This document shows positions 7,044 through 56,839 of a stretch of DNA of 64,000 nt, one piece after another. The notes under the pieces were generated by a model. The model made no database searches, was not told the DNA's origin, and saw only the letters and a program-made list of their open reading frames with translations. Within the stretch, counting starts at the first letter, position 1, and each line of letters begins with the position of its first letter. The stretch spans positions 372,001-436,000 of the forward strand of contig OZ251229.1 of assembly GCA_965240325.2 (NCBI GenBank). The letters run 5' to 3'. Position numbers and translations under genes: made by a program. The DNA comes from Rebecca billardiae RCC1528. Taxonomy: Eukaryota; Protista; Haptophyta.

Positions 7044-7076
<33 letters not shown>

Positions 7077-14400: not shown

Positions 14401-14500
14401 GAAAATCTGAAGTGCACTGAACTACCGGAAAAACCCTTTGGCCAACCGTGAACCGCCGACCGCCGTGCGTCCGCCGACAGCGCTGGCGCGAGCACCCTCG

Positions 14501-26110: not shown

Positions 26111-26969
26111 ACCGGGCTGGCAGACGAGTCAGCAGCTCGGCGTCGGCATGTTCTGCAGTGGACAAGCCACCGGCGCGCCCTCGGGTGCGCCCATGCGCTC
26201 GAGGTCGGCGCGTTGTCATAGATAATAATGCAGCTGGCAAGGCCAATGCCGGTCGGTTGGCAAGCCACCCGCGCGCCCCTGCACGTGCTCGAGCTGCGGC
26301 GTCGTCATCTCATGCAGCGGCTGCCATCGTCCCTGTCTTGCCGACAGCCAAAGGGCGAGCATGACGGCGGCGCGCGGCCCCATCCGAGGCGAACATCAGC
26401 GGATGTGCAGCGAGACGGTTCGATGCCAGCTGGGCGATCATGGAGCAGTGCATGTCCCTGCAGAGCTGGCTTTGCTCTGCGGCGGGCCGGCCGCTGCCGA
26501 TGCGGAGGACGACACGCTGCAGCGCTCGGACGAGTGCTGGCCGGACCATCCGGAGCGAACGCTCGTCGACTTTGACGGCCTCCCTGTGCCCGCCGGCTCC
26601 GGACCGCGCCGACAACGCCGACGTCGCGAGCACACCATCACCCAAAGGCCGAGTGCGCGAGGCGCAAGGCACGCCACGCCCGCGTGCTTCTCGTCGCGCC
26701 CAACGATGACGGCGCGCAGATATCCATCTCGCGCAAGCCCCGAAAGAGCGGCTGAAAGAAGCAGGTGTCGATCTGGTACTTAGCGGGGCGAAAAGTCTGA
26801 AAGATGCAGATTTCGCCAGATTTTGGGGCGGTCCGGGCGCCCTTTTCGCATTCCGGCGCACTCGGCGGCCCGAGCGAGCGAGTCGCGTACTGTAGCAACG
26901 GTGGTCACCCTTGCGCGTAGTAGAGTGCAGACTAACTGTCGATCGTTCGCGCAGGCGCCTTGTGAAGCC

Positions 26970-29179: not shown

Positions 29180-30430
29180 CTCGGAGTGCATCTTCGTCCG
29201 CACCTCAGGAGACATCATCGACGTCATCGCAGTGTACGTGGACGACCTGCTTATTCTGCTGAGCAGCTCCCCCGACAGCGCAAGACCCAGCTCGATTATC
29301 GAAGAAATTCGAAAAGAATTCACCCTCCGGGATCTGGGACCAGCAACGACTTTCCTAGGCATGGGTATCGCCCAGGGCCCCAGGGGCCCAAGTCGACGAC
29401 TATCTCCATGTGACGGTACATCACCGATCTCCTCAAGAGGCACCGGACATGAGCGACATTACGCCCGTCGACAACCCATGCGGATCGGCGGCAGAGCAAC
29501 CGACATCATCAATCGAGACAGACGATTCATCATCGTGCTCGTCGGAGGAATCAAAGACCTACGTACCGAGCAATTGTCGGAGCGCTACTATTCATCATGA
29601 ACACCTGCCGACCCGACATCAGCTACGCAGTCAATATATGTTGGCAAGGCACATGGCGAGCCCAAGCTCGAACGGCCTTACAGGTGCCAAGCAAGTGCTC
29701 AGGTACTTGGCCTGGACAAAGAATTCCGGCATCTCTTTCATCAAATCAACACCTACTCAGCCACGGACGGAGACGTTTGTGGACTCGGATTGGGCCAACG
29801 ATACAAAGGACCGCCGCTCGACAGGAAGCTATATCTACTTCCACGCAGGCGGCCCAGTATCGTGGCGCACCTTCAAGCAGTCAATCACAACCCTCTCATC
29901 ATGTGAGGCCGAATATGTCGCTCTCGCGGAAGGAGCCAAAGAGGCAGTTTACCTACGCGACGTCATCAGCGATATTCTCAATATTCCCAAGACGCCCATT
30001 GTGATCCATGAGGACAACAAGGGGGCGATTGATCTCTCAAAGAACAGCATCCATCATCATAAGCGCACCAAGCACTTCGACGTACGACACCATTTTATTC
30101 GAGATTGTGTCGACCTCGGTGCAGTCAACATAACCAAGTTACACACATCGGAAAACATCGTCGATTGTCTTACCGAGGCGCTACCCATTAACCCAAGGAC
30201 AAGTTTACAAAATTCCGAGACATCATGGTGACACCAGTTACGAATTGAGTAGAGGGCGTGTCAAAACCCCAAGGCAGCCATTGGCGCCATTCCCCAGCTC
30301 GAGGTTTCAGTCTCAAGGCGCTGAGCAATTCTAAGCGCCACCATGGTGAGGCTTCATTCCAATTCAAAACCTTATCATCGACCTCAACTGTCGGTTTTGT
30401 TCATGCTCCGTGCACCAAATTCATTCATCA
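29180..30430 (+). mobile_element. Ty1/copia 3' fragment: end of RT, full RNase H, PPT and start of 3' LTR (TG at 30259; LTR end uncertain)
   Basis: 29180-30008 duplicates 21640-22458 and continues IHEDNKGAI...KRTKHFDVRHHFIRD; purine-rich gagtagagggcg is followed by TGTCAAAA. Confidence 0.88.
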
Positions 30431-32149: not shown

Positions 32150-33230
32150 GCCGAGCCCGGCGGCGAGGGCGGCGGCGAGCACAACCATGCCGTCGCCCGG
32201 GCCGAAGCGCAGCAGCCGCAGCTTGTGGTTGGACGAGTCGGCGAGCACGCCCAGAGGCGGCGCGTGCGCGGAGAGGGCGAGGGCGGAGGGGAAGCGGAAG
32301 CGGGCGAGCGCGCCCGCGCCGTCGAGGTCGCCCGGCGCCCCGCCACCCGCCGCGGTGCTCACGCCGCCCGTCGCGAGCTGCACGCGGCGCACGAGGTGCC
32401 GCCCCGAGTCGACCGCGAGGGCGAACGCGCCGCCTGCGCCGCCGCCGCCGCCGAACGCGACGCCGCGCAGGCTGAACCCGAACACGTTGGCAACGGCGCC
32501 GCCGGCGAGGGTCGAGACGAGGCCGGTGTCGAGGGCGAACGTGCGCAGCAGCCGGTTCCCCGCGTCCGTGCGCACGGCGAGCGAGCCGTCCGCCGAGAGC
32601 GCGACCCCCGTCGGCGTGTCCGGCCGCGCGCCGCCGCGGATGCCGTCTGCGTCGCGCGCGCCAAAGGCGCCCGCGACCGTGCTGACAGCCTGCACGCCGC
32701 CGTCCGCGGCGCTGAGCTCGACCCTGCGCACGGTGTGGCCGGATGCGTCGGCGACGAGCGCGAACGACGCGTCGGCGGCGATGGCGATGCCGCTGGGCAG
32801 CGCGAACGACGCGTTGGCCGGCGGTCCGTCCAGCCCGCGCCCTCCGCGCCCGTGCCCGCCGCCGTGCTGACCGCGCGCGTGCCGAGCTCGAGGCGCCGCA
32901 CCTTGCGGGTGCCCGCGTCGGCGACGTGCGCGGTGGTGCAGTTAGGGGCAATCACGATGCCCGCCGGCAGGAAGAGCTCCGCCGCGGCGCCGGTGCCGCC
33001 CGCCGCGCCCTCCGAGCTGGCCGGCGCCGGCCACGATCGAGACCGCGCCGTCCGCCGTCTCCACGCGCCGCACGCGCGAGTGGCCGCGGTCAGTGACGAG
33101 CGCGAAGGAGCCATCGGGGGCGAGAGCGATGCCGTACGGTGGGGAGAAGGTGGCGACCGACGCCGCGCCGTCCGCGCGCCCCGCCTGCCCGGTGCCTGCT
33201 GGCGTGCTCACATTGGGCACGCCGTCGTCG
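32150..33230 (-). pseudogene. NHL-repeat beta-propeller gene, frameshifted
   Basis: Repeats VSTxAG..G..DG...A.F..P.GIA...DGSFALVxD...RVRR are spread over three frames, with shifts near 33010 and 32840. Confidence 0.75.
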
Positions 33231-33457
33231 CGCGCGCACGCCTGCGCACGCGCCGCGCCGCGCACGGCGTCAGCCGCGGCGGGGACGGGGATGTGCGACT
33301 GGCCCCGCATGTGTACGCCACGCGCGCCGGCGCGAGCGCGCGCGCATCGCGCGTTCAAGCCGCGCGCGCCACGCGAGGCCGGCGGGCCGCGCAGACCAGA
33401 CGGCCGCCCGCCATCGTGCGCGCTGGAACAATAACTCAGTAAGCCACCACGAACGGC

Positions 33458-33763
33458 AGCGGGCGCATCTCGCCTGCCTGAGCTGTGTGCGTCTCTTATT
33501 CTTAGTAAACTGTACAGTACAGGTCTCTCTTCGGAGAGCGTGCGCTGAAGGATGGCGCGGCAACCTGCCACCGTGAGCCTTACGCACGTTAAAACAAATA
33601 AACTGTGTGCGCACGTTAGAACATAGTAAACTGTGTTGGCGGGCGTCAATCTCGCCTGCCTGTCAGCTGGGTGCGTCTCTGATTATTCTTATGATAGTAA
33701 ATTGTACTACCATTATACCTTACTCTCTTCGGAGAGCGTGCGATGAAGGATGGCGCGGCAACA
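33458..33763 (+). repeat. Dispersed structured repeat, copies 2 (33520-33606, ending ttaaaacaaataaactgt) and 3 (33723-33763), in a local tandem duplication
   Basis: Matches 16137 and 56746; the upstream gcgggcg..atctcgcctgcctg..gtgcgtctct block is also duplicated. Confidence 0.8.
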
Positions 33764-34593
33764 GCCTGAACCGACAAACTCGACTCGAGCGACACGTTCA
33801 TTCAACGTGATGAGGCCGAGCCGAGGGGGAGGCTGGGGGAAGCTTGCATTCCAAGGGGCGTCGATCGCCGCGCCGCATCCCAGAACCGCGTCGGGCGCGT
33901 CGGCCGCACCCAAGACGAGACGTTGTCCAAAGTCCTCCGCCCTGGGCTCGCATTTCGCGCTTGCACGGATGCCCTCGAGCATGGTCAGGTGCCGTGCGCG
34001 CGCCGGCTTCACGCAGGACGCGCTTCCTTTACACGCTCCGCGCCATGCGGTTTCTGGTGGGCCCGAGCTCCGCTTCGCACGATGGCCCGCTTTGTTCCAA
34101 CGGTCTCCTCCCGTGATGCCGGCCGTGGCGGCCACCACCGCAACCGGGTTGTCTGGGCGTTTGGAGACCTGCCTGTGGTGACGCGCCAGTTGGTCGCGGC
34201 CCGTCGCCTTGGTTACGTTGTCAGGCTACTCATGGGCGTTCCGCACCAGCAGGCGGAGCTGCGCAGCGGATCCACCCATCACGCTGCTCATGGACAGGGC
34301 ATGCACGTGTGACGCGGCGCCCTCTCGGCGGCGTCCCGCGTACATGACGATGTCCATCGCACGGCCCCCCAAAACGCTCACGACGCGCGGTTCGGCATGG
34401 CGACCCAAGATTTATTTATTCTCGATTCATCCTTCTTTCTTTTTCTTGGCTGTGCTTTCTTATTTTTTTCCAACACCAAGCAGCCTGTGCGGCAGCAGCC
34501 CCTCTTCCCGCCAACAGCCTCGCGCGGAGCACGCCGTCAAACCTTGTGATCGCGGACTCGGAAGACGCCAAGGAAAACGCACGCCTCGAAAAC

Positions 34594-37500
34594 ATGAACC
34601 TCCTCGTCGCCATCCTGGCCATCTCTTCCGGGTGCGCCACGCGCTGCCTTCGCTCGCTGCGCGCGCGCGCTGCGAAGACGAACGCGCGCGCGCGCGGCCA
34701 CGCCGCGCACCGGCAAGCACAACACGCGTGCGCGCCCAGCGCGCGAGATTGGCGCGGCGTGCTGCTTGCGCGTGCATGTATGACGCGCGCCATCGCACTT
34801 CCTTCGCCTGCCTTGCCCGACGCGAACGTCTCGCCCTTCCGGGCACGCGTGCTAACCTCGCGCGCATGCATGCATGCGCGCGCGCTCGTCGCCGCGCAGA
34901 CTCGGGTGCGGCACGGCGGAGCCGACGAATCCAGCCTCGCCACTCGGCATGTGCGACGGGAAGCCCTCGACCCGGCAGCAGCAACGGTGAGCCTTGCGCG
35001 ACTCTCGCGCGCCGCGCATGCGCGTTGCGCTTGCGTCTCGCTCGCGCGCCGCGCGACGGCCGTCGCGATCGCAGGGCACGCGTGCGGCCAGCGCGGCGCT
35101 TCGTCGCATCGTGCGGCGCGCGGCACGCGCGAGCGCGCGCATCGGCCCATGCCGGTCCCAGTGGCCCTGGCCCGCCTCGCGCGACGCGATCGTCTAACCT
35201 TGCCGGGCGCGTGGGCATGCCCACCACGCGCTCGCGGCCGCGCAGGCGAGCTGAAGTCCCGCCGCACTCGCCATCAGGCATGCTCAGCCCTGGGCCAAGC
35301 CAGCCTTCGCCAAGCCCGTCGCCGTCTCCACCGCCGAGCCCGCCGACTTCGCCTCCGGCAAAGCCCGCCGGCGTCTCCGCCGCCGAGCCCGCCGCCCTCG
35401 CCGCCGCCGAGCCCGCCGCCCTCGCCGCCGCCGCGCTCGCCGCCGAGTCCGGCGCCGCGCCCGCCGCCGTCGCCGCCGCCGAGCCCATCACCGAGTCCGC
35501 CACGCTCGCCTCCACCAAGCTCGCCGCCCTCGCCGCCGCCGGGCAGCCCGCCGCCGTCGCCGCCGCCGAGTTCGCCGCCGAGTCCGGCGCCGCGCCCGCC
35601 GCCGTCGCCGCCGCCGAGTCCATCACCGAGTCCGCCGTCGAGTCCGCCTTCGCCGAGCCCGCCGCCGTCTCCGCCGCCGAGCCCGCCGCCCTCGCCGTCG
35701 CCGAGTCCATCACCGAGTCCGCCGCCGAATCCGCCTTCGGCGAGCCCGCCGCCGAGTCCGGCGCCGCGCCCGCCGCCGTCGCCGCCGGTACGCCCGCCGC
35801 CGTCTCCACCGCCCAGCCCGCCGCCCTCGCCGCCGCCGCGCTCGCCGCCGAGTCCGGCGCCGCGCCCGCCGCCGTCGCCGCCGCCGAGTTCGCCGCCGAG
35901 TCCGCCTTTGCCGAGCCCGCCGCCCTCGCCGCCGCCAAGCCCGCCGCCGAGTCCGGCGCCGCGCCCGCCGCCGTCGCCGCCGCCGAGTCCATCACCGAGT
36001 CCGCCGCCGAATCCGCCTTCGCCGAGTCCGCCTTCGCCGAGTCCGGCGCCGCGCCCGCCGCCGTCGCCGCCGCCGAGCCCATCACCGAGTCCGCCACCCT
36101 CGCCTCCACCAAGCTCGCCGCCCTCGCCGCCGCCAAGCCCGCCGCCCTCGCCGCCGCCGAGCCCATCACCGAGTCCGCCACCCTCGCCTCCACCAAGCTC
36201 GCCGCCCTCGCCGCCGCCAAGCCCGCCGCCCTCGCCGCCGCCGAGTTCGCCGCCGAGGCCGCCTTCGCCGAGCCCGTCGCCCTCGCCGCCGCCGAGTTCG
36301 CCGCCGAGTCCGCCTTCGCCGAGCCCGTCGCCCTCGCCGCCGCCGCGCTCGCTGCCGATTCCGCCGCCGAGTCCGCCTTCGCCGAGCCCGCCGCCGTCTC
36401 CGCCGCCGAGCCCGCCACCCTCGCCGCCGCCAAGCCCGCCGCCCTCGCCGCCGCCAAGCCCGCCGCCCTCGCCGCCGCCAAGCCCGCCGCCGTCGCCGCC
36501 GCCAAGCCCGCAGCCCTCGCCGCCGCCGCGCTCGCCGCCGTCGCCGCCGCCGAGCCCGCCGCCGCCGCCTCCACCAAGCTCGCCGCCCTCGCCGCCGCCA
36601 AGCCCGCCGCCCTCTCCGCCGCCGAGTTCGCCGCCGAGTCCGCCTTCGCCGAGCCCGCCGCCCTCGCCGCCGCCAAGCCCGCCGCCGAGTCCGGCGCCGC
36701 GCCCGCCGCCGTCGCCGCCGCCGAGTCCATCACCGAGTCCGCCGCCGAATCCGCCTTCGCCGAGCCCGCCGCCGAGTCCGGCGCCGCGCCCGCCGCCGTC
36801 GCCGCCGCCGAGCCCATCACCGAGTCCGCCACCCTCGCCTCCACCAAGCTCGCCGCCCTCGCCGCCGCCAAGCCCGCCGCCCTCGCCGCCGCCGAGTTCG
36901 CCGCCGAGTCCGCCTTTGCCGAGCGCGCCGGCCTCGCCGCCGCCAAGCTCGCCGCCCTCGCCGCCGCCGAGCCCGCCGCCCTCGCCGCCGCCGAGTCCAT
37001 CACCGAGCCCGCCGCCGAATCCGCCTTCGGCGAGTCCGCCTTCGCCGAGTCCGGCGCCGCGCCCGCCGCCGTCGCCGCCGCCGAGCCCATCACCGAGTCC
37101 GCCACCCTCGCCTCCACCAAGCTCGCCGCCCTCGCCGCCGCCAAGCCCGCCGCCGTCGCCGCCGCCGAGTTCGCCGCCGAGTCCGCCTTTGCCGAGCCCG
37201 CCCGCCTCGCCGCCGCCAAGCCCGCCGCCGAGTCCGGCGCCGCGCCCGCCGCCGTCGCCGTCGCCGAGTCCATCACCGAGTCCGCCGCCGTGCCCGCCTT
37301 CGCCGAGTCCGCCTTCGCCGAGTCCGGCGCCGCGCCCGCCGCCGTCGCCGCCGCCGAGTCCATCACCGAGTCCGCCGCCGAATCCGCCTTCGGCGAGCCC
37401 GCCGCCGAGTCCGGCGCCGCGCCCGCCGCCGTCGCCGCCGCCGAGCCCATCACCGAGTCCGCCACCCTCGCCTCCACCAAGCTCGCCGCCCTCGCCGCCG

Positions 37501-40500
37501 CCAAGCCCGCCGCCGTCGCCGCCGCCGAGTTCGCCGCCGAGTCCGCCTTTGCCGAGCGCGCCGGCCTCGCCGCCGCCAAGCCCGCCGCCGAGTCCGGCGC
37601 CGCGCCCGCCGCCGTCGCCGCCGCCGAGTCCATCACCGAGTCCGCCGCCGTGCCCGCCTTCGCCGAGTCCGCCTTCGCCGAGTCCGGCGCCGCGCCCGCC
37701 GCCGTCGCCGCCGCCGAGTCCATCACCGAGTCCGCCGCCGAATCCGCCTTCGCCGAGTCCGCCTTCGCCGAGTCCGGCGCCGCGCCCGCCGCCGTCGCCG
37801 CCGCCGAGCCCATCACCGAGTCCGCCACCCTCGCCTCCACCAAGCTCGCCGCCCTCGCCGCCGCCAAGCCCGCCGCCGTCGCCGCCGCCGAGTTCGCCGC
37901 CGAGTCCGCCTTTGCCGAGCGCGCCGGCCTCGCCGCCGCCAAGCCCGCCGCCGAGTCCGGCGCCGCGCCCGCCGCCGTCGCCGCCGCCGAGTCCATCACC
38001 GAGTCCGCCGCCGAATCCGCCTTCGGCGAGCCCGCCGCCGAGTCCGGCGCCGCGCCCGCCGCCGTCGCCGCCGCCGAGCCCATCACCGAGTCCGCCACCC
38101 TCGCCTCCACCAAGCTCGCCGCCCTCGCCGCCGCCAAGCCCGCCGCCCTCGCCGCCGCCGCGCTCGCTGCGCTCGCCGCCGCCAAGCCCGCCGCCGTCTC
38201 CACCGCCGAGCACGCCGCCCTCGCGGCCGCCGCGCTCGCCGCCGAGTCCGGCGCCGCGCCCGCCGCCGTCGCCGCCGCCGAGTCCATCACCGAGCCCGCC
38301 ACCCTCGCCTCCACCAAGCTCGCCGCCCTCGCCGCCGCCAAGCTCGCCGCCCTCGCCGCCGCCGAGCCCGCCGCCCTCGCCGCCGCCGAGTCCATCACCC
38401 AGCCCGCCGCCGAGTCCGCGTTCGCCGCGCCCGCCGCCCTCGCCGCCGCCAAGCCCGCCGCCCTCGCCGCCGCCGAGCCCGCCGGCCTCGCCGCCGCTGC
38501 GCCCGTCGCCCTCGCCGCCGCCGCGCTCGCTGCCGAGTCCGGCGCCGAGCCCATCGCCGAGTCCGCCACCCTCGCCTCCACCAAGCTCGCCGCCCTCGCC
38601 GCCGCCAAGCCCGCCGCCGAGTCCGGCGCCGCGCCCGCCGCCGTCGCCGCCGCCGAGTCCATCACCGAGTCCGTCGCCGAGTCCGCCTTCGCCGAGCCCG
38701 CCGCCCTCGCCGCCGCCGAGCCCGTCGCCCTCGCCGCCGCCGCGCTCGCTGCCGAGTCCGGCGCCGAGCCCATCACCGAGCCCGCCGCCGAGTACGCGTT
38801 CGCCGCGCCCGCCGCCCTCGCCGCCGCCAAGCCCGCCGCCCTCGCCGCCGCCGAGCCCGCCGGCCTCGCCGCCGCCGCGCTCGCCGCCGAGTCCGGCGCC
38901 ACGCCCGCCGCCGTCGCCGCCGCCGAGCCCATCACCGAGTCCGCCACCCTCGCCTCCACCAAGCTCGCCGCCCTCGCCGCCGCCAAGCTCGCCGCCCTCG
39001 CCGCCGCCGAGCCCGCCGCCCTCGCCGCCGCCGAGTCCATCACCGAGCCCGCCGCCGAATCCGCCTTCGGCGAGTCCGCCTTCGCCGAGTCCGGCGCCGC
39101 GCCCGCCGCCGTCGCCGCCGCCGAGCCCATCACCGAGTCCGCCACCCTCGCCTCCACCAAGCTCGCCGCCCTCGCCGCCGCCAAGCCCGCCGCCCTCTCC
39201 GCCGCCGAGTTCGCCGCCGAGGCCGCCTTTGCCGAGCCCGCCGGCCTCGCCGCCGCCAAGCCCGCCGCCGAGTCCGGCGCCGCGCCCGCCGCCGTCGCCG
39301 TCGCCGAGTCCATCACCGAGTCCGCCGCCGAATCCGCCTTCGCCGAGTCCGCCTTCGCCGAGTCCGGCGCCGCGCCCGCCGCCGTCGCCGCCGCCGAGCC
39401 CATCACCAAGTCCGCCACCCTCGCCTCCACCAAGCTCGCCGCCCTCGCCGCCGCCAAGCCCGCCGCCCTCTCCGCCGCCGAGTTCGCCGCCGAGTCCGCC
39501 TTTGCCGAGCCCGCCGGCCTCGCCGCCGCCAAGCCCGCCGCCGAGTCCGGCGCCGCGCCCGCCGCCGTCGCCGCCGCCGAGCCCATCACCGAGTCCGCCA
39601 CCCTCGCCTCCACCAAGCTCGCCGCCCTCGCCGCCGCCAAGCCCGCCGCCCTCGCCGCCGCCGAGTTCGCCGCCGAGTCCGCCTTCGCCGAGCCCGTCGC
39701 CCTCGCCGCCGCCGCGCTCGCCGCCGAGTCCGGCGCCGCGCCCGCCGCCGAGTCCGGCGCCGCGCTCGCTGCCGATTCCGCCGCCGAGTCTGCCTTCGCC
39801 GAGCCCGCCGCCGTCTCCGCCGCCGAGCCCGCCACCCTCGCCGCCGCCAAGCCCGCCGCCCTCGCCGCCGCCAAGCCCGCCGCCCTCGCCGCCGCCAAGC
39901 CCGCCGCCGTCGCCGCCGCCAAGCCCGCCGCCGTCGCCGCCGCCAAGCCCGCCGCCGTCTCCGCCGCCGCGCTCGCCGCCGAGTCCGCCACCGCGCTCGC
40001 TGCCGAGTCCGCCACCGAGTCCGCCGCCGAGTCCGCCTTCGCCGAGCCCGCCGCCCTCGCCGCCGCCAAGCCCGCCGCCCTCGCCGCCGCTGAGCCCGCC
40101 GCCGTCTCCGGCGACGCGCTCGCCGCCGAGTCTGGCGCCGCGCTCGCTGCCGAGTCCGCCGCCGAGTCCGCCGCCGAGTCCGCCTTCGCCGAGCCCGCCG
40201 CCCTCGCCGCCGCCGAGCCCGCCGCCCTCGCCGCCGCTGAGCCCGCCGCCCTCGCCGCCGCCAAGCCCGCCGCCGTCGCCGCCGCCAAGCCCGCCGCCCT
40301 CGCCGCCGCCGAGCCCGCCGGCCTCGCCGCCGCCGCGCTCGCCGCCGAGTCCGGCGCCGCGCCCGCCGCCGTCGCCGCCGCCGCGCTCGCCGCCGAGTCC
40401 GCCTTTGCCGAGCGCGCCGCCCTCGCCGCCGCCAAGCCCGCCGCCGAGTCCGGCGCCGCGCCCGCCGCCGTCGCCGCCGCCGAGCCCATCACCGAGTCCG

Positions 40501-43500
40501 TCGCCGAGTCCGCCGCCGCCGAGCCCGCCGCCGTCGCCGCCGCCGAGCCCGCCGCCCTCGCCGCCGCCGCGCCCGCCGCCGAGTCCGCCGCCGCGCCCAC
40601 CGCCGTCGCCGCCGCCGAGTCCTTCACCGAGCCCGCCGCCCTCGCCGCCGCCGAGCCCGCCGCCCTCGCCGCCGCCGAGCCCGCCGCCGTTTCCACCGCC
40701 GAGCCCTCCGCCCTCGCCGCCGCCGCGCCCGCCGCCGAGTCCGGCGCCGCGCCCGCCGCCAAGCCCGCCGCCGTCGTCGCCGCTCACTTCACCGTCGAGC
40801 CACCAACCCTCGCCGCCGCAGAGCCCACCGCCGACCCCGCCACCGTTACCACCACCGCCGCAGGTGCCACCTGCACCGCGGCCAAGTCCACCGCCGACCT
40901 CGCATCCGAGCCCGCCACCTGCACCGCGGCCGAGTCCACCGCCGACCTCGCATCCGAGCCCGCCACCTGCACCGCGGCCAAGTCCACCGCCGACCTCGCA
41001 TCCGTGCCCGCCACCTGCACCGCGGCCAAGTCCACCCGCCGCTCCGCCGCCGAGCTCGTCGCCAAGCCCGCCACCGAGCCTGCGTCCGCCAAGCCGGCCG
41101 CCGCCGCCGCCGCCATCGCCGCCGCCGAGCTCGCCTCCGCCAAGCCCACCGCCGTCGTCGCCGCCACGTCCACCGCCGAGCGCGCCGCCGAGCTCACCTC
41201 CGTCGCGAACGCCAGCTTGGCCGCCGAGCCCGCCGCCGTCGCCGCGGCCAAGTCCACCGCCGTCGCCGCCACCTTCGCCGCGGTCATGTCGCCTGCCGCC
41301 GGCGCCGCGCGGAGCGCCTGTCTGGGCGCGAGCCCGCACGCGTGTGCGCCTCGCCTGTACAGCGAGCGTCCGGCGGCGCCCTTGCGCCGCAAGCGTCAGA
41401 GCCGCAAGGAGGCACGTCGCCGGCTCGGGCGGGAGGCGAGTGGACGCGAGCGAGCCGCTAAGCGCGCGGGGCGTCTCCTGCCGTGCGCGCTGGGCGTACT
41501 GGCGCTCGCGGTGCTCGCGCTCGGCTGCGCCTGGCGGTACGCCCCGTGTGCGCTGCTGGCGCTGGTCGCGGCGATCGCGGTCGGCTGCGCGGCGATCGCG
41601 GCCGTCGCCGATTGCGCGTGGGCGCACGGCGCGCGCGTGCCCGAGCCGCGCGGCGAGCCTCCGGCCGAGCCCCTGCGCCGCGAGCGCCGGGTCCGCAGGG
41701 CGCGGGCCACGCGCGGTGCGCCACGCCCGCGCAGCGAGCGCCGCACGCGGACGAGCGCCAAGAGGAGGTCACGTCGCAGTCGGCAGCTCGAGCGTGCCCG
41801 CGCCCGGCTCGCGCGCGCGGCGAATCCGTTCGCGCTGGCCGTGTTCTCCGAGAGCGCGGCGCGTGTGTTCGAGGAGCAGGCCGACGGGGCCAAGCGCACG
41901 GCGGAGCGGGCCGAGCGCGCGGCGAACCCGCTCGCGCGCGCCGTGTATGCCGACAGCGCGGCGCGTCTGTTCGAGGAGCAGGCCGAGGGGGCCAAGCGCT
42001 TGGCGATGCGGGCCGAGCGCGCGGCGAATTGGCACGTGCGAGCCGTGTATGCCGAGAGTGCGGCGCGTCCGTCCGGGGAGCACGCCGAGGGGGCCAAGTG
42101 CGGTGGCTGTCTGCCCGGGCGCGCTGCCGAGCGCGAGGCGAGCTTCGTGGCGCGCGTGCTGCACGTGCTGCGCGCGCTGTGCGGGCTGGCACTCGCGCCG
42201 CTGGCGCTCAGCTGCGCCTGCTCGTGCGCCGCGAGCGCGCGCGGTGCGCTCGCGGCGCTGGCCGAGGTGGTCGCGGCCGGCGGCGCGGTGATCGCGGCCG
42301 GCGGCGCGGTGTTCGCGGCCGGCGGCGCGGTGTTCGCGGCCGGCGGCGCGGTGATCGCGGCCGGCGGCGCGGTGTTCGTGGCCGGCTCCATGGTGTTCGC
42401 GGCCGGCCACGAGTGGGAGGCGGGCGCGATCGAGGGTCAGCTCAGCGAGCCTCCGGACGCGCCCCCGCGCCGCAAGCGCCGGCGCCGCCAGGCGCGGGCC
42501 GCACGCGGGGCGGCACGTCTGCGCAGCGGGCGCCGCACGCGGACGAGCGCCAAGAGGAGGTCACGTCGCAGTCGGCAGCTCGAGTTTGCCCGCGCCCGGC
42601 TCGCGCGCGCGGCGAATCCGTTCGCGCTGGCCGTGTTCTCCGAGAGCGCGGCGCGTGTGTTCGGGGAGCACGCCGAGGGGGCCAAGTGCGGTGGCTGTCT
42701 GCCCGGGCGCGCTGCCGAGCGCGAGGCGAGCTTCGTGGCTCGCGTGCTGCACGTGCTGCGCGCGCTGTGCGGGCTGGCACTCGCGCCGCTGGCGCTCAGC
42801 TGCGCCTGCTCGTGCGCCGCGAGCGCGCGCGGTGCGCTCGCGGCGCTGGCCGAGGTGGTCGCGGCCGGCGGCGCGGTGATCGCGGCCGGCGGCGCGGTGT
42901 TCGCGGCCGGCGGCGCGGTGTTCGCGGCCGGCGGCGCGGTGATCGCGGCCGGCGGCGCGGTGTTCGTGGCCGGCTCCGTGGTGTTCGCGGCCGGCCACGA
43001 GTGGGAGGCGGGCGCGATCGAGGGCACGGAGTCGTGTCGCCGTCGCCAGGCCGAGCGGGCCGAGCGCGCGGCGAGTCGGCTCAAGCTCGCCGAGCGCGCT
43101 GCGAGTCTCGCGCGCGCGGCGCGTCTGCTCGAGCGAGCCGAGCGCGCGGCGAGTCACGCGGCGCACGTGCGGCGCGCGCTGCGCGAGTGGGCACCCGCGC
43201 TGTGCGCGGCGGGCGCGCTCGGCGGCGCCTACCTGCTCGCCCCGTGGGCGTGCCCGACGCTGGTCGCGCTGGTCGCGCGGATCGCGGCCGCCCGCGCGCA
43301 GGCGCGCCCGAGCCTCCGGCGCGGCGGCCGTCGCAGCCGCGCGCGCGCGGCCGAGCCCGCCCTCCGCGCGCAGCGCGTCACGCTGCGCGGCGGCGGCGGC
43401 GCGGACGAGAACTGCCTCGCGCTGGAGCCGGCGGCACCCGTCGGCGCGCCGGCCCGCCGCGCGTGCCTCCGCGCCGCGCTCGCCACCGCCGTGCGCCTCC

Positions 43501-46500
43501 TCGCGCTCCGCGCCGGCTCGCGCGCCGACGCGGACGCGCTGCGCGCGCGGTGGGCGATCGCCGAGCGCGCGCTGAAGGGCAGGACGCACCGGCTCGGCGT
43601 GCTGCAGGCCGTCGCCGACGCGCTCTGCGTCGACATCGTGGTCTTGAGCGCGGGCTACGGCGCGCACGCGTTCCGCTGCCGCACGGGCGACGCGCCGCCC
43701 GGCTCGTGCATCTGGCTGCTGCACGAGGGGGGCGGCGGCGCGGGCGTCGGGCACGTGCGCGCGCTGGTCCACGCTGAGGACCGAGCCGCGCGTCTCGCCC
43801 TCGGGCTGTGCGAGGAGGGCGAGCCGCTCGTCGTCGCGCGCGGCGACGCGCCGGACGGCGCCATTGAGACGCGCCGCGTCGGCGCGCCCAAAAAGCGTCG
43901 CCCCCCGGCGACGCCGCCGTCGGGCGACGTCCCGACGGGACGACCCAAGGACAAACGCCGACGGGCCGCGGCCGTTGACGCGGCGACGCCCGAGGCCGCT
44001 GGCGACGGCGAGGCGGCCGACGTGGGGATGGACGAGGCCGCTGGCGACGGCGAGGCGGCCGACGTGGGGATGGACGAGGCCGCTGGCGACGGCGAGGCGG
44101 CCGACGTGGGGATGGACGAGGCCGCTGGCGACGGCGAGGCGGCCGACGTGGGGATGGACGAGGCCTCGGGCGACGGCGAGGCGGCCGACGGCTCTCTGCC
44201 CGACCCGGACGACGACGAGAACGACGAGGATTTGGCGCGCGCGCTCTTGGAGGACGAGGACCGCGTCGAAGCCGACGACGACGGAGGGGCCATGGGCGAC
44301 GGCAGCGCGCGCGCGGCCGCGGAGGGCGGCCGAGCCACGGCGAACGGGTCGCCGCCGCTCGAGCCGCCGCCGCCCGCGCGGGTGTCGCAGCGCAGGCGGA
44401 CGCGCATCCGCGACGTGGTGCAGAGCACGGTCGACGGCGTGATGGCGTACGCGCGCGGCCTCGCTGGGCAAGGCCATGACCACGCCACGCGGTGCGAGGA
44501 GTTCGAGACGGAGGTCGGTGATCCCGGCCCCGCTCTGGAGACGTGGGTGATGGCGGCGATGGACTCGTACACGTCCCGTCAGGCGCCGACGCGGGACACG
44601 ACGCGCGGCCGCGCGCGCAGCTGGTTCGAGCGCCGGCTGGAGCAGAGCGGCCGCGTGAGCACGGCGTACGAGGGCGCGTTCGACGTCCTGGGCGTGCTCG
44701 AGGTGTCGTCGTACGCCGTGAACGGCGAGTGCGCAGCGTTGGACAAGCGCGGCTTCAAGATGGTCGCCTCGTGGATGGCGAACATCTGCTTCCGTGCCGC
44801 GTGCATCGAGCTGGGCTTGCCTTACACGGCCACCGACCTGCTCGGCAAGGCGCACGCGCCGCGGGCCGTGCAGCCCACGTCGCCCGGCGTGCGCGAGGAG
44901 GCGCGGGCGACGCTCAGGCACGCGCTGCGCTCAGGCGCGCCGATCGTGAAGCTGGCCACGCGCACGTTCGTGTCAGCAGCCGACGCGGCGCACGTGGCGC
45001 ACGATGTCGCGCGCGAGCTCCGCGGGACGTGCACGATGCTGCAAAGCCCGACAAGCATGGCGGGCGGCGTGCACGTGCTCGAGTGGGTGGACGGAGACGG
45101 CGAGCAGATCGTTACGGTCCTGTACCAGGCGCTGCACCCCGAGAACAAGCTCACGCGGCTCGGCGCGCCTCGCGCCGAGGCGGGCGGCGCGCGCCCTCCC
45201 CCCAATCGCGCCGAGCTGATGGACGCGGTGCTGCTCCTCGCCATGCGCGCGGCCGCGGGCGAGGGCGCGTCGTTTGGCGCCTTCCACCCGGCCGTCGCCG
45301 CCCACGCGGAGCGGCAGCGCGTGGCCGGCGGCGGTGCGATGGTGCGCGACGGGCAGCACCCCGTCGTGCGCATGTGCAGGGAGGGCATGCGGCGCGAGCG
45401 CGAGGTCGGAGGCGGCGCGCGCGTCGCCGACGTCGAGCCGCGCGTGCAGGCTGAGCTGCGCGCGGAGTACGAGCGCCTCCGCGAGGAGCTCGGGGCGGCT
45501 GCGCCCAAGGACGTGGACGCGATGGCTGCGAGGGAGGGCGGGCCGTACAGGTGCTGCCTCGTGCTGCTCGGCCGGCGCTCGGCGGCCATCAAGGCCACTG
45601 CGGTGGAGGCGCTCGTCAAAGAGGTGCCGGCGCTCGGCTCCCACACGGCCGTGCTCGCGATGCTCGCCGTGTTCTACTATTCCAAGCCGGTGCAGGCGGT
45701 GCTCGAGCCGCTGCGCCAGGCGGCGAAGGCCAGCGACCACGCGAACGTGAAGGCGCGACTCGGAGAGCTCGCGCGACTCACGCCCGAGGGCGGGCTCGCG
45801 GCGATCGACGAGAAGCACGGCGAGGCCGCGCGCGATGTGCTGTCCAAGAAGGTGCGCGACGCGCTGCGGTGGCCCGCGCTGTGGTGCAGCGCGCCGTGCA
45901 GGGCCATCGTCGCCCGGCTGCTCGGCGCGGGCGACTCGTCGGACGCGACCCACGTGCGCGAGCTGCTCGAGCAGCTCGCGCGCCTCACGCCCGAGGGCGT
46001 GTTCGCCGCGCTCGACGCGAAGCACCGCGAGGCGGCGGGCGCGTGGCTGCCCGAGAAGGTGCGCGACGCGCTGCGGTCGCCCCCGCTGTGGTGCAGCGCG
46101 CCGTGCAGGGCCATCGTCGCCCGGCTGCTCGGCGCGGGCGACTCGTCGGACGCGACCCACGTGCGCGAGCTGCTCGAGCAGCTCGCGCGCCTCACGCCCG
46201 AGGGCATGTTCGCCGCGCTCGACACGAAGCACCGCGAGGCCGCGCGCGATGTGCTGTCCAAGAAGGTGCGCGACGCGCTGCGGTGGCCCCCGCTGTGGTG
46301 CAGCGCGCCGTGCAGGGCCATCGTCGCCCGGCTGCTCGGCGCGGGCGACTCGTCGGACGCGACCCACGTGCGCGAGCTGCTCGAGCAGCTCGCGCGCCTC
46401 ACGCCCGAGGGCATGTTCGCCGCGCTCGACGCGAAGCACCGCGAGGCCGCGCGCGATGTGCTGTCCAAGAAGGTGCGCGACGCGCTGCGGTGGCCCCAGC

Positions 46501-48927
46501 TGTGGTGCAGCGAGCAGTGCAGGGCCATCGTCGCCCGGCTGCTCGGCGCGGGCGACTCGTCGGACGCGACCCACGTGCGCGAGCTGCTCGAGCAGCTCGC
46601 GCGCCTCACGCCCGAGGGCATGTTCGCCGCGCTCGACACGAAGCACCGCGAGGCCGCTGCCGCGTGGCTGCCCGTGAAGGTGCGCGACGCGCTGCGGTGG
46701 CCCGCGCTGTGGTGCAGCGCGCCGTGCAGGGCCATCGTCGCCCGGCTGCTCGGCGCGGGCGACTCGTCGGACGCGACCCACGTGCGCGAGCTGCTCGAGC
46801 AGCTCGCGCGCCTCACGCCCGAGGGCGTGTTCGCCGCGCTCGACGCGAAGCACCGCGAGGCCGCGCGCGATGTGCTGTCCAAGAAGGTGCGCGACGCGCT
46901 GCGGTGGCCCGCGCTGTGGTGCAGCGAGCAGTGCAGGGCCATCGTCGCCCGGCTGCTCGGCGCGGGCGACTCGTCGGACGCGACCCACGTGCGCGAGCTG
47001 CTCGAGCAGCTCGCGCGCCTCACGCCCGAGGGCATGTTCGCCGCGCTCGACACGAAGCACCGCGAGGCCGCTGCCGCGTGGCTGCCCGTGAAGGTGCGCG
47101 ACGCGCTGCGGTCGCCCCCGCTGTGGTGCAGCGCGCCGTGCAGGGCCATCGTCGCCCGGCTGCTCGGCGCGGGCGACTCGTCGGACGCGACCCACGTGCG
47201 CGAGCTGCTCGAGCAGCTCGCGCGCCTCACGCCCGAGGGCATGTTCGCCGCGCTCGACGCGAAGCACCGCGAGGCCGCGCGCGATGTGCTGTCCAAGAAG
47301 GTGCGCGACGCGCTGCGGTGGCCCGCGCTGTGGTGCAGCGAGCAGTGCAGGGCCATCGTCGCCCGGCTGCTCGGCGCGGGCGACTCGTCGGACGCGACCC
47401 ACGTGCGCGAGCTGCTCGAGCAGCTCGCGCGCCTCACGCCCGAGGGCATGTTCGCCGCGCTCGACACGAAGCACCGCGAGGCCGCTGCCGCGTGGCTGCC
47501 CGTGAAGGTGCGCGACGCGCTGCGGTGGCCCCAGCTGTGGTGCAGCGAGCCGTGCAAGGCGATCGTCGCCCAGCTGCTCGGCGCGGGCGACTCGTCGGAC
47601 GCGACCCACGTGCGCGAGCTGCTCGAGCAGCTCGCGCGCCTCACGCCCGAGGGCGTGTTCGCCGCGCTCGACGCGAAGCACCGCGAGGCGGCGGGCGCGT
47701 GGCTGCCCGAGAAGGTGCGCGACGCGCTGCGGACGCCCCCGCTGTGGTGCAGCGCGCCGTGCAAGGCCATCGTCGCCCGGCTGCTCGGCGCGGGCGACTC
47801 GTCGGACGCGACCCACGTGCGCGAGCTGCTCGAGCAGCTCGCGCGCCTCACGCCCGAGGGCGTGCTCGCCGCGATCGTCGCGAAGCACGGCGAGGCCGCT
47901 GCCGCGTGGCTGCCCGTGAAGGTGCGCGACGCGCTGCGGTGGCCCCAGCTGTGGTGCAGCGAGCCGTGCAAGGCGATCGTCGCCCAGCTGCTCGGCGCGG
48001 GCGACTCGTCGGACGCGACCCACGTGCGCGAGCTGCTCGAGCAGCTCGCGCGCCTCACGCCCGAGGGCGTGCTCGCCGCGATCGTCGCGAAGCACGGCGA
48101 GGCCGCTGACTCGGTGCTGCCCAAGCAGGTGCGCCCCGCGCTGCTGAAGGGCAGCACGTGGAACACCAAGCAGAGGAAGGACATCGTGGCCGAGCTGCTC
48201 GGCGCGGATTGCGCGGCGGGCTCGGACGCGCGCGCGCTGCTGGTGCAGCTGTTGGCGCTGTCACCCTGCGCGGTGTTCAGTGTCCTGGCCCTCAAGTACG
48301 AGAAGGAGGTTACCGAGCTGCTGACCGTCAGGGTGCGGGCAGGGCTCCGCGCCACGAACGTATGGGTTCACGCGTCCTGCAAGGACCTTGTCTCCGAGCT
48401 GCTGCTCACCAGGGCGCCCGAGAAGGTGGCGCAGCTGGCTGCGTTGGTCAGCCCGACCGGCGCAGGCTCGGCACAGGGCGCGGACGTACGCATTCATCGC
48501 GTGCGTGCTCAGGAAGATCTGCTCGGGCTCGTTGGGCAGCGCAACGGCGACAATCGGTTCGCGTGCCCGGTCCCGGCGTGCAAGCAGGCATTCAAGGAGT
48601 TTAGCAAGTTGGAGGTGCGCGACGCGCGCGCGAGCCGCGCACGGGCGCTCGCGCAACCACTGCATCTCTTGGTCTGACTCGCCGCGTCTTCGCCCCCCCC
48701 CCCCCCCCCTCCACCCCACCCCCGCACTGGACCGCCACGCGCGATGCACTCGTCGGCGTTGTGCGCAGAGGCACCTGTTTAGCCATGTGGATGGGAAGCC
48801 AGGCCAATGCTGCGCGTGCGGCACCTTTTTTTCCCAAGTAGAGCATGCACTGGTGCGCGCACTGCACACGTGCGCGCCCGTGCTCGGCGGCCTGCGTCGC
48901 TACTGGCCTGTCATCTGCCGTCGCTGA
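34594..48927 (+). CDS. Giant modular protein (~4,550 aa as modelled): signal peptide, SPPP/Ala-rich tract, TM-like segments, LRGG-OTU-like, NLS, UDG-like, 69-aa repeats, C2H2 finger. Predicted exons 34594-34631, 34900-34986, 35246-48614, 48769-48927
   Basis: Spliced N-terminus MNLLVAILAISSGLGCGTA; the 13-kb frame is open; the last intron completes CPVPAC-x3-F-x5-L-E|R-HLFSH. The frame read across the SPPP tract is uncertain. Confidence 0.65.
35300..41280 (+). repeat. ~6-kb (Ser-Pro3)n-type coding repeat with higher-order duplications
   Basis: ccg ccg agc / ccc tcg units; reads as SPPP in one frame and AAAEP/AAAKP in another. Confidence 0.95.
41650..43025 (+). repeat. Internal in-frame duplications (588-bp offset, 42078 vs 42666) with 21-bp AAGGAV[IF] repeats
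   Basis: Near-identical blocks at DNA and protein level. Confidence 0.9.
43992..44190 (+). repeat. 42-bp (14-aa EAAGDGEAADVGMD) acidic tandem repeat, ~4.7 copies
   Basis: Direct repetition. Confidence 0.95.
45768..48405 (+). repeat. 207-bp (69-aa) coding tandem array: 11 full units plus 2 degenerate
   Basis: LARLTPEG starts at 45768, 45975 ... 48045, with an exact 207-bp period. Confidence 0.97.
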
Positions 48928-49479
48928 CACGCGAAGAGGGCGGCGCGGTTGGCCGCGCGCGTGCCGTGCGTGGCACATGCGCAGAAACACGCCAAGAAGT
49001 GCCAGAAGGCGACGTGCACGGCTACGACTACGACTACGACTACGACTGCATGATCATCGGGTTGATATTGTAATAATGGCGTGAGGCGAGCTGCCTGAGT
49101 CCAGCTGCCGGACACGCTCACGCAGGCACCCCCTGCGCAAGCTCTAGCTGCCGCGGAGCTGCCGCAGCCACCGCCTGGCTCATGGCTGCTCGGGCAGCCA
49201 CCGGCTCCGCACGCGGACAGTCGGCTACTACCGAGTATACAGCATATCACTGATTCTGTCATTGGTGGGCCACGACTGGCTGGCCCTGGCCATATCAGAT
49301 ATTATCCGCGGACGCCTATGTACATGCCTGACGGTCGGTTTCTCACTGCTACTTCCGGTCTCAGGGGGTCCTAAGCAGAGGTGGCCTAGGGCCGCTAGAG
49401 CGATATCCGCCGCCAACATTGACCCCCCGACACACGCGCACGCTCGACGGCACTGCCCGAGTGGCTCCGGAGACACTCG

Positions 49480-50885
49480 TCACGCCAGCCATTCGCGCGT
49501 CTCGGCGTCCTGCAGGTCGTACACGCACATGGCCGTCGGTGCCCGCTCGCGCTCGAACCTGACGGAGGCGATCTCGCCGCCAGTGAGCACGCCCACGATC
49601 GTGCCATAGACCCAGCTCCGCCGGGCCTCCTTGCCCTCGCACCCGCTGTGCAGCAGCGCGCGGACGTACTTGCCCTTGCTCACCGCGAGCGCGCGCCCCG
49701 GCGCGGCGCTCACGATGTTGGCGCGTGGGACTTTGACCGGCTCGGGGCCCGCAGCGATGCGCACCGTGACCGAGTCGTCCGAGACGGCATAGACGACGCC
49801 CGCCGAGCAGCCGCCGGCGACGAGGTTGAAGACGAAGCGCTCCCCGACCGCAGGCGGCTTGGCGATCAGCTTGTTCACCTTGTCGTCCTGCGCGAGAACG
49901 CTCTCATCCTGATCCTCCTCGTCCACGACGAGACACTCGTTGAGCATCTCGTCGTTATCCGGGCCAAACGGAAACATCGTGATCGGCTCCCAGCTCGCCG
50001 GCCAGTGCACCCCGTGCGTCGCGACCCAGCTCACCAGCACCTCGACCACGAGCCGCTCGCGCGTCGACTCGACGACACGCTTCACGACACGAGAGCCGTG
50101 CAGGCCGCGCACCTCATGCTCATCCTCGGCAGCCACGCGAGTCTTGGTCTTGGACTTCTTCCTCTTCTTGCTCGGCGGCTCGGACCCAGCCTCAGGGCTG
50201 CGCCTCGCCTTCGCCTGCGCGCACGTAGCCATAGTCGGCGCAGGTGGCGCGGCCGGCGCGCACGTGAGTTGTCGATCGCTCGTATCGCGCTGCCGCGCGG
50301 TCGGCGCGCACGGTGATAGCGCGCGCGCGCGCTCGCGGCCACACGCACCTCGGCGGCCGCCAGCAGCTGCTCATACGGGCAGTCGCGCGCCGGCTGCGCG
50401 TACTTCTCCTCGAGCAGCTTCGCCAGCGCGATCATCGCGTCCTCCTTCGACATTGACCACCTGGTCGGCGCCGACTTGTTCCCGTCGATCAGCACGAACA
50501 CCTGGATCTGATCGATCAGCTCCTTCGTCGTGCACTCGAGGCACTGCGACCACGAGCTGAAGCGCGTCGGCGCGACTTCCTCGCGGATGCGCGTCTCGCG
50601 GTCGGCCTTCGACTTCTCCGCCGCGTCGCGCCGCTCGATGCCGGCCTCGATCTCGGGCAAGATCTTGGCGAGATCCGCGCGCCACCGGCTCAGCTCGGTC
50701 GGGTAGATCGCGCGCTTGTACGCGCTGAGCTCCTTCGCGGCCTGCATCGCCACCGGTAGCAGCTTGGCCTCGAGCTCGTCCAGCGCCCACGTGCCCACCT
50801 TGTTGGCCGACGCCTTGACAAGGTGGCAGATGTTCGCGTTCGTCGGCGTGAGCGCTCGCTTGCGCTTCTCGGCCGCCATGCCCAT
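49480..50885 (-). CDS. Chromodomain plus two Tudor/Agenet-like domains, ~420 aa, intron 50215-50348; N-terminus resembles a transposase C-terminal tail
   Basis: HEVRGLHGSRV...EVLVSW...WPASWEP (chromo); VGERFVF..GVVYAV..SVTV and KGKYVRAL..WVYGTIVGV..ASVRFE (Tudor-like); KKRKK NLS; clean phase-0 intron. Confidence 0.65.
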
Positions 50886-56745: not shown

Positions 56746-56839
56746 CTACAGTTTATTTGTTTTAACGTGCGTAAGGCTCACGGTGGCAGGTTGCCGCGCC
56801 ATCCTTCATCGCACGCTCTCCGAGAGAGACCTGGAAACT
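56746..56839 (-). repeat. Dispersed structured repeat, copy 4 (longest)
   Basis: Reverse complement of the 33520 copy, extending to agtttccagg as in the 16137 copy. Confidence 0.85.

Follow-up and report, generated by a model that had tools for sequence, protein, structure and literature searches.

The subject of this report is a giant gene in a 64-kb window of nuclear DNA from the haptophyte Rebecca billardiae RCC1528 (contig OZ251229.1); the window is the whole stretch that was analysed, and all positions are given within it. The gene lies on the plus strand between 34594 and 48927, was confirmed as a single large and genuine coding unit, and is an unusual, fast-evolving, lineage-restricted orphan. 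Its predicted product presents, in order, an acidic Ala-rich stalk, a hydrophobic hairpin with glycine-zipper segments, an LRGG motif followed by a domain resembling the OTU cysteine proteases, two basic clusters like those of a nuclear localisation signal (NLS) together with an acidic repeat, an orphan region, 13 repeats of 69 residues, and two zinc fingers. The gene, this architecture and the OTU-like domain, taken jointly, were judged to be on balance probable. The product is most likely a membrane-associated protein, the C-terminal half of which is predicted to be cytosolic and to join a protease directed at ubiquitin or ubiquitin-like proteins to a binding platform made of the repeat array and the fingers. 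The parts are individually of known kinds, and their combination is undescribed and without a homologue.

The gene model was read from the DNA sequence alone. A scan for open reading frames (ORFs) found 4,822 stop-free codons at 34209-48677 (+), and residues are numbered along this ORF, residue n starting at nucleotide 34209+3(n-1). The GC content at third codon positions (GC3) was 0.9-0.99 in the ORF frame from ~35,280 to ~48,600, without a break or a change of phase, and the signal was not present upstream or downstream of these points. The plus strand was indicated by a higher GC content at first than at second codon positions (GC1 > GC2), a relation that held on this strand only. In the non-stalk part (41286-48677) the ORF frame contained the terminal stop only and the other five frames contained 5-32 stops each; 25.6 stops were expected in this interval from position-specific base frequencies, and the probability of finding none was ~8e-12. 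Long ORFs are cheap here because the DNA is so GC-rich: the stalk region (35280-41285) was open in three to four frames, and the antisense strand also had ORFs of 2,100 codons. The coding status of the stalk rests solely on its GC3 of 0.98 and on the continuity of the frame. A Gly-rich antisense reading of the stalk, which has the same wobble phase, was ruled out by the GC1 > GC2 relation seen only on the plus strand and by the frame running into the unique region.

The full model comprises three exons and a product of 4,521 residues, with a TGA stop at 48925-48927. Among all GT..AG pairs tried for the 3' intron, only 48615/48768 yielded the arrangement F-x-C-x4-C-x3-F-x5-L-x2-H-x3-H, in which FACPVPACKQAFKEFSKLE is joined across the intron to RHLFSH to give a C2H2 finger. 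By a regular-expression test, the spliced peptide FACPVPACKQAFKEFSKLERHLFSH agreed with the consensus (F/Y)-x-C-x2-5-C-x3-(F/Y)-x5-hydrophobic-x2-H-x3-5-H. Behind the finger come a linker of Krueppel-like type, VDGKPGQC, and a second, degenerate finger. At the 5' end, splicing from the donor G/GTGCGC at 34632 to the acceptor GCGCAG/ at 35245 keeps the phase, and the 3' intron uses these signals as well. A signal-peptide-like first exon containing MNLLVAILAISSG is plausible on this pattern, and translation might instead start at an in-frame ATG, at 35217 or 35280. The initial annotation had described one spliced frame with an intron-completed finger and the same end coordinate; GC3, the stop counts and the 3' intron support that frame, and almost every feature it listed was found in its place. 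Its signal peptide fared less clearly: the exon splices in phase, but the call is one of pattern and has the two alternative ATGs against it.

OTU proteases have a D/N-x-N-C-L motif around the catalytic Cys, an H-aromatic/aliphatic-x-x-L motif around the His about 90-120 residues later and usually an acidic third residue, and their fold is papain-like, with the Cys on a helical lobe and the His on a beta-sheet lobe. In the giant protein the motifs occur in the same order, as D-E-N-C3069-L, then GVLQAVADALCVDIVVL, then GVG-H3182-VRAL, with ~113 residues between Cys3069 and His3182. Both structure predictions of this study were made with AlphaFold2 (AF2) from a single sequence, because there were no homologues for an alignment. 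Over the OTU-like domain the model had predicted local distance difference test (pLDDT) values of 54-70 and showed helices followed by four strands. When the model was compared with the PDB using Foldseek, OTU enzymes made up most of the top 50 matches listed, including rice OTUB-like, otubain-1, A20, yeast Otu1 and Otu2, OTUD2, Cezanne, OTULIN, LotA and the proteases of turnip yellow mosaic virus (TYMV) and maize rayado fino virus (MRFV); a few OTU proteins were also among the matches in the viral library. The model thus weakly indicates an OTU-like fold, and the assignment as an OTU-like protease is consistent with the motif order but weak.

The motif TLRGG occupies residues 3058-3062 (43380-43394) and is followed by D-E-N-C at 3066-3069. 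LRGG was the sole LxGG sequence among 2,630 non-stalk residues and stands 7 residues ahead of the candidate catalytic Cys, a placement with a chance probability of ~0.001-0.003. In viral polyproteins, ubiquitin-tail-like sites are processed by OTU-fold proteases, which are also capable of acting in trans (KLNGA and RLLGS in TYMV, RLIGG in equine arteritis virus; PMC5695851), and such sites are cut by the protease-deubiquitinases of tymoviruses, marafiviruses and arteriviruses (PMC5695851, PMC3744425, PMC3968130). As LRGG is unique, adjoins the Cys motif and resembles the sites that these viral enzymes process, a functional link between motif and domain is reasonable. Self-cleavage in cis is sterically implausible, because only 7 residues separate LRGG from the candidate Cys. 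The motif might be cut in trans between neighbouring molecules, might act as a pseudo-substrate, or might be there by coincidence. Of the earlier proposal that the protease cuts at the TLRGG directly before it, the placement has proved unlikely to be accidental, and the motif lies too near the Cys for a cut within the same molecule.

Similarity to the viral enzymes (TYMV PRO/DUB, MRFV, arterivirus PLP2) extends to the order of Cys motif, central helix-strand and His motif, to a compact size of ~130 residues and to a ubiquitin-tail-like site in the same polypeptide. The TYMV and MRFV proteases gave the Foldseek matches with the lowest root-mean-square deviation (2.1-2.6 A over 45-57 columns, probability 0.85-0.87). 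There are also differences. The viral sites are downstream of the protease, whereas LRGG is immediately upstream of the domain; the giant protein has no significant sequence or profile match and no replicase domains; and it is encoded by a cellular gene of host-like composition, with putative catalysis.

The stalk (~1,835 residues) was 48% Ala, had a net charge of -133, contained no Cys and no Trp, and was encoded by a 12/48-nt tandem array identified with Tandem Repeats Finder (TRF); it is probably disordered or extended. Downstream of it, the two segments of the candidate hairpin reached Kyte-Doolittle maxima of 2.45 and 2.70, and further hydrophobic segments were detected at residues 2653-2733 and 2849-2929 by the hydropathy scan. 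The internally duplicated module that follows the hairpin contained a basic cluster, 34-residue ANPFALAVF-type repeats (102 nt x2.8 at 41813-42098, TRF), a Cys-rich hydrophobic stretch and AAGGAVF heptads, the latter forming 'glycine-zipper' runs at 42266-42407 and 42854-42995. The hairpin and the glycine-zipper segments most likely hold the protein on a membrane. The R-R-K-R within LRRKRQSRK could be a dibasic motif of the convertase type. Strongly basic clusters were present on both flanks of the hairpin (2420-2471), and the basic flanks of a membrane segment stay cytosolic according to the positive-inside rule. Both flanks would therefore be cytosolic, in conflict with an exported stalk. 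The stalk and hydrophobic segments of the initial annotation are thus present; a signal peptide would export the stalk, and the basic flanks of the hairpin argue against this.

The bipartite NLS-like clusters, PKKRR-x14-PKDKRRR, and the acidic repeat were found as annotated, the repeat being called by TRF as x4.8 at 43991-44190; the clusters may function as an NLS. The ~444 residues that follow had been described as a glycosylase-like alpha/beta domain ending in LHPE. The uracil-DNA glycosylase (UDG) hallmarks are an alpha/beta fold, a motif A (GxxPx) and a motif B (HPS...). The poor AF2 model was drawn all-helical here with pLDDT < 50; no UDG was among the top 50 Foldseek matches listed; and no match was found in Pfam, PDB or NCBIfam for residues 3391-3834. 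The likeness was reduced to a loose resemblance (VLGVLEVSSY ... LHPE, with ALHPE at residue 3641), and the glycosylase assignment is not supported.

In the repeat array, TRF detected a 207-nt (69-residue) unit x11.5 with 93% identity at 45766-48144; the copies to either side of this interval were divergent. The 10 central copies, which span 45918 to 47987, had the same nucleotide sequence throughout codons 1-27, and all variation fell in codons 28-69, concentrated at codons 41-46, 54-56 and 61-62. Few repeat types make up this variation; they are shuffled and show an alternating R/A pattern. The second AF2 model was all-alpha, with ~6 helices per unit and pLDDT 50-70, and Foldseek matched it only to generic or designed helical repeats and to the transcription activator-like effector (TALE) dHax3, with E > 0.1. 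The array is thus weakly predicted to be a generic all-helical solenoid; of the solenoid proposed earlier, the helical character was reproduced, though with low model confidence. A TALE-like reading was rejected, as the 69-residue unit had no significant 34-residue sub-periodicity (37% of shuffles reached the observed score) and the dHax3 match was weak (TM-score ~0.2, E 0.4-3). Matches of the array to Pfam AbiEi_3 (E 8e-20) and PADLOC AbiEi (E 9e-17) were also set aside, being sums of 12-18-bit matches on near-identical copies, with E 0.16 for a single repeat.

The array has in common with TALE, PPR, OPR and PUF proteins that its units are tandem, helical and nearly identical, with substitutions at few positions, and with TALE proteins also an LTPE motif and dHax3 among the Foldseek matches. 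It differs from TALE in having a 69-residue unit of ~6 short helices instead of a two-helix hairpin of 33-35 residues and in lacking sequence similarity. After splicing, the first finger fits the C2H2 (Krueppel-type) pattern exactly, and the linker behind it contains G-K-P; what departs from that type is that a protein of ~4,500 residues ends in just one canonical finger and a degenerate one. The fingers and the array may bind nucleic acid. The features of the gene are collected in Table 1.

Table 1. Positions of the exons, introns, domains, motifs and repeats of the giant gene in the 64-kb window
Feature	Position	Strand	Evidence
Putative exon 1, ATG and signal-peptide-like MNLLVAILAISSG	34594-34631	+	read from sequence, in-phase splice; weak GC3 signal in exon frame
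Putative intron 1, 614 nt	34632-35245	+	no main-frame coding periodicity before ~35,280; splice-site enumeration
Main exon, 13,369 nt, single frame	35246-48614	+	ORF, GC3, stop counts per frame
Ser-Pro run SPSPSPSPPPSPPTSPP	35307-35357	+	sequence
Ala/Glu/Ser/Pro-rich repetitive stalk	35308-41238	+	TRF, composition, GC3 0.98
Thr/Ala-rich segment with CTAAKSTADLAS-type 16-aa repeats	40785-41285	+	composition, sequence
Basic cluster LRRKRQSRK, just upstream of candidate membrane hairpin	41382-41408	+	sequence
Two adjoining hydrophobic segments, candidate membrane hairpin (aa 2420-2442, 2444-2471)	41466-41621	+	Kyte-Doolittle
Internally duplicated module	41653-43024	+	self-BLAST 92-96% identity, TRF, hydropathy
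Last hydrophobic segment WAPALCAAGALGGAYLLAPWACPTLVALVARIAAA (aa 2994-3028)	43188-43292	+	sequence
SLRRGG ... TLRGG, ubiquitin-tail-like motifs directly upstream of OTU-like domain (aa 3035-3062)	43311-43394	+	sequence
OTU-like cysteine-protease domain (aa ~3063-3195)	43395-43793	+	motifs, AF2, Foldseek
Two basic clusters PKKRR-x14-PKDKRRR, NLS-like (aa 3227-3252)	43887-43964	+	sequence
Tandem repeat DEAAGDGEAADVGM, acidic, unit of 14 aa (42 nt), about 5 copies	43991-44217	+	TRF
Orphan middle region, ~444 aa (3391-3834), contains ...VLYQALHPENK	44379-45710	+	no sequence-library match
13 x 69-aa repeats: 10 near-identical central copies and divergent terminal copies	45711-48401	+	TRF, register, AF2
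C-terminal zinc fingers, split by intron 2	48555-48927	+	splice enumeration, sequence
Intron 2, 154 nt, C-rich tract	48615-48768	+	sole GT..AG pair completing C2H2 consensus

No relative of the gene was found. A phmmer search of residues 3040-3920 against 1.84 billion representative proteins gave 5 matches, all of them low-complexity matches to the acidic repeat, and no OTU protein was found by phmmer in this collection (1.84e9 proteins) or in the PDB, where the sequence searches were empty. Word-index searches of the C-terminal 436 residues (4387-4822) and of the transmembrane region (2360-3057) returned nothing; metagenome and IMG/VR scans found no relative; Pfam, PHROG, PADLOC and NCBIfam gave no credible match; and no paralogous piece of the gene was present elsewhere in the window. 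At locus L001 of Diacronema lutheri there was no counterpart upstream of the DDT gene, and since the proteome of this species, the nearest sequenced relative, is in the collection searched, the giant gene is absent or unrecognisable there. Within the reach of the databases, the earlier statement that the architecture is undescribed is upheld. Protists commonly have giant repeat proteins that are orphans. Recent nested tandem duplications at six scales were detected within the gene (TRF, self-BLAST). Nonsynonymous and synonymous differences between copies stood at 21:3 in the 69-residue array and at 15:2 and 18:2 in the duplicated module, and GC3 was preserved despite this excess. Recent duplication and a nonsynonymous excess with GC3 kept mark the protein as one that evolves rapidly and whose composition is under strong pressure.

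Several points weigh against a membrane-associated protein with an OTU-like protease. For the protease, there was no evident acidic third catalytic residue (His+2 was not Asp, Asn or Glu); the protease may use a Cys-His dyad, as that of TYMV does. In the AF2 model, the mean pLDDT of which was 40.6 overall and thus of low confidence, the Cys of D-E-N-C was not at a helix N-terminus and was followed by prolines, and Cys3086 (RRACLRAAL) was a second candidate for the nucleophile. The Foldseek matches to OTU enzymes were all sub-significant (E 0.4-2, TM-score <= 0.38, partial alignments of 45-190 columns), and no Pfam family was matched at E <= 1 for residues 3040-3400 or at E <= 10 for residues 3055-3224. 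The OTU call of the initial annotation hence has the motif order and a list consisting mostly of OTU enzymes in its favour, and these scores and the missing Pfam match against it. For the rest of the protein, the membrane segments come from a simple hydropathy scan of a GC-biased protein rich in Ala, Gly and Leu; the first exon with its signal peptide is provisional, and the topology that it predicts clashes with the basic clusters flanking the hairpin; there may be internal promoters or other splice forms; and the copy numbers in the array may depend on the assembly.

The reading that survives best after a membrane-associated protease with a binding platform is a membrane-anchored deubiquitinase or scaffold without self-processing, in which LRGG would be coincidental or serve as a pseudo-substrate for autoinhibition, and proteins, not nucleic acid, would be bound by the repeats and fingers. 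It was considered a possible, if unlikely, explanation. It shares the OTU-like evidence from motifs and Foldseek, and there was no evidence of cleavage. Most cellular OTU enzymes need folded ubiquitin, a bare LRGG peptide being insufficient for them, and contacts between proteins are often made through arrays of helical repeats and through C2H2 fingers. Against it, LRGG is unique and adjoins the catalytic motif, and the NLS-like clusters and the Krueppel-type linker suggest a nuclear role in binding nucleic acid.

If the protease is active, the adjoining LRGG would be its obvious substrate or pseudo-substrate. Cleavage at LRGG would take place in trans, between neighbouring molecules, and the cut would free a fragment with the OTU-like domain, the NLS-like clusters, the repeats and the finger that could enter the nucleus. 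Such LRGG-dependent release or processing was regarded as doubtful. The proposed logic is like that of MYRF/MrfA, with its intramolecular chaperone auto-processing (ICA) domain, and of SREBP, ATF6 and NTL, in that one chain would unite an anchor in the membrane, its own protease, an NLS and a module for DNA binding (PMC3742443, PMC3828593, PMC5883603). By its logic the scheme stands closest to self-cleaving membrane-bound transcription factors such as MYRF and to the viral OTU-type protease-deubiquitinases, and by its parts to the OTU superfamily and to C2H2 fingers. The ICA domain of MYRF is of the phage-tailspike kind, unlike the OTU-like protease of the giant protein; there is no homology between the two, and Pfam detected no ICA domain in the giant protein. 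The DNA-binding part would moreover be C-terminal to the anchor here, unlike in factors of the MYRF type, and both cleavage and nuclear entry would be hypothetical steps.

The initial annotation had gone further, to a type-I-like surface protein with an exported stalk from which an OTU cut after LRGG would release a repeat-guided, glycosylase-like nuclear effector, the whole acting as a one-component signalling, defence or toxin system. The signal-peptide-like exon that splices in phase, the extracellular appearance of the Ser-Pro run and of the Cys-free acidic stalk, the position of LRGG next to the OTU-like domain, the NLS-like clusters with a C2H2 finger and the clustering of repeat variation at few positions are all in keeping with this model, and self-cleaving membrane-bound transcription factors such as MYRF exist (PMC3742443). 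However, the UDG-like fold was unsupported, cleavage in cis at 7 residues from the Cys is implausible, the basic clusters on both sides of the hairpin contradict a stalk on the outside, and for the later hydrophobic segments neither number nor orientation is defined. The variation among the repeats agrees with a small set of shuffled types in an alternating R/A pattern, and PADLOC gave no defence family except the weak AbiEi-like matches recurring on near-identical copies. This full model is very unlikely. Still more improbable was considered a proximity-activated relay, in which anchored molecules would cut each other after LRGG with their own OTU-type protease, and the freed fragment would go to the nucleus, where the array of 13 repeats, through its few hypervariable patches, would read nucleic acid modularly as a new class of repeat.

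A largely non-functional ORF, young or decaying, that stays open through extreme GC content and the expansion of repeats, or a pair of neighbouring genes with the mere appearance of a fusion, received the same low credence as the relay. The three to four open frames of the stalk, the GC3 dip at 41319-41409 and the lack of homologues in the databases searched might point in this direction, as might the differences between duplicates, which are mostly nonsynonymous and suggest weak constraint at the protein level. Such an ORF would not be expected to contain zero stops in 2,463 non-stalk codons when ~26 were expected and the other frames had 5-32, nor a GC3 phase unbroken over 13.2 kb, nor an intron that exactly completes a canonical zinc finger; and two genes would have to share a frame without a stop between them, so that their separate translation would need extra splicing. 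The least probable of all is the polyprotein of a mobile element or virus, transposon-borne (as the initial annotation had suggested) or endogenised: proteases of the OTU fold are known from the polyproteins of RNA viruses (PMC3968130) and from Ginger1 DNA transposons (PMC2836005), the gene is almost intronless and without cellular homologues, and ~1 kb upstream there is a short dispersed repeat (33520-33762), of which 56748-56833 is an inverted copy, but Pfam and PHROG scans found no transposase, integrase, reverse transcriptase, helicase, RNA-dependent RNA polymerase or capsid domain, no terminal inverted or long terminal repeats (LTRs) surround the gene, there is no second copy in the window and no relative in IMG/VR, GC3 and exon structure match those of the neighbouring host genes, and the short repeat, being present also at 16137-16205, is a dispersed element and not a terminus.

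The window is a eukaryotic nuclear segment of 55-86% GC that also contains a Ty1/copia element, an INO80-like ORF, two RCC1-like genes and a DDT/WHIM/PTM-Tudor gene. The sole strong match of the DDT gene (ORF 50965-54774) was KFE25_007084 of D. lutheri (Pavlovales, Haptophyta; 761 bits, ~50% identity), and only this gene and the RCC1-like repeats were matched when locus L001 was compared with the window. A green-algal origin, to which the GC content, the PTM-Tudor domain and a TGTAA motif might have pointed, was rejected on the match of the DDT gene. In D. lutheri the GC content is 73%, single-exon genes make up 45% of the genes, and the repeats are mostly of LTR type (PMC8379373); other genes of the window likewise have multi-kb uninterrupted exons, matching this pattern. 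The source is accordingly a GC-rich, intron-poor haptophyte of the pavlovophyte kind, related to D. lutheri but distinct from it. The INO80-like ORF, at 1826-8215 (+) and 80-86% GC, has a DBINO domain of the INO80 type in a multi-kb intron-free exon, with a (GCA/GCC)n coding microsatellite of ~440 nt at 2975-3417. The RCC1-like-domain paralogues (14438-15931 and 26823-28379) were 82% identical over 1.36 kb of DNA, and the second had a weak F-box-like N-terminal match. On the opposite strand, the neighbours at 32161-33241 (-) and 49441-50161 (-) had coding GC3 periodicity and no Pfam domain, and are apparent orphans.

Repeats were found at several places in the window. The dispersed repeat of ~65-90 nt (97-98% identity) was present at 16137-16205 (+), 33520-33606 (+), 33723-33762 (+) and 56748-56833 (-), with a core CAGGTCTCTCTTCGGAGAGCGTGCGATGAAGGATGGCGCGGCAACCTGCCACCGTGAGCCTTA that forms a CTCTC-TTCG-GAGAG hairpin and has no Rfam match; it may be an element like a miniature inverted-repeat transposable element or a short interspersed nuclear element, or a family of small RNA genes. 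Two inverted copies bracket the giant gene together with the DDT gene, and the further copies argue against transposon termini. The Ty1/copia element (18793-22460) comprises a retroviral SH3-like/integrase part at 18793-21066 and RVT_2 at 21166-22359, and an 827-nt segment of it (21640-22460) is repeated at 29181-30007 with 98.3% identity. Direct repeats in a lower-GC stretch (59386-59661 and 60401-60676, 99.6%; 58954-59141 and 59691-59878, 100%) may be LTRs or a tandem duplication of another element. ARAGORN predicted a tRNA-Ser(CGA) at 51668-51761 (+), inside the ORF of the DDT gene, and a tRNA-Ala(CGC) at 55214-55296 (-). No Rfam tRNA reached the gathering score, and since both predictions are unusually long (94 and 83 nt), this suggests false positives in GC-rich DNA.

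Because the architecture is absent from the 1.84 billion representative proteins, nothing about the giant protein can be transferred by homology. If the conservative reading of the gene as a membrane-associated OTU-like protein is true, the gene exemplifies how nested tandem duplication, together with an extreme GC content, builds a taxonomically restricted gene of 4,500 residues in a streamlined haptophyte genome, and the protein adds a highly divergent OTU-like domain that is missed by current profiles. If, in addition, LRGG and the OTU-like domain release the C-terminal half, no earlier nuclear factor of cellular origin tethered to a membrane would have employed a protease of the OTU type as RNA-virus polyproteins do, and the 69-residue array would merit testing as a new modular binding scaffold. 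The relay, were it true, would represent a new kind of self-releasing membrane-bound nuclear factor with a programmable-looking repeat scaffold.

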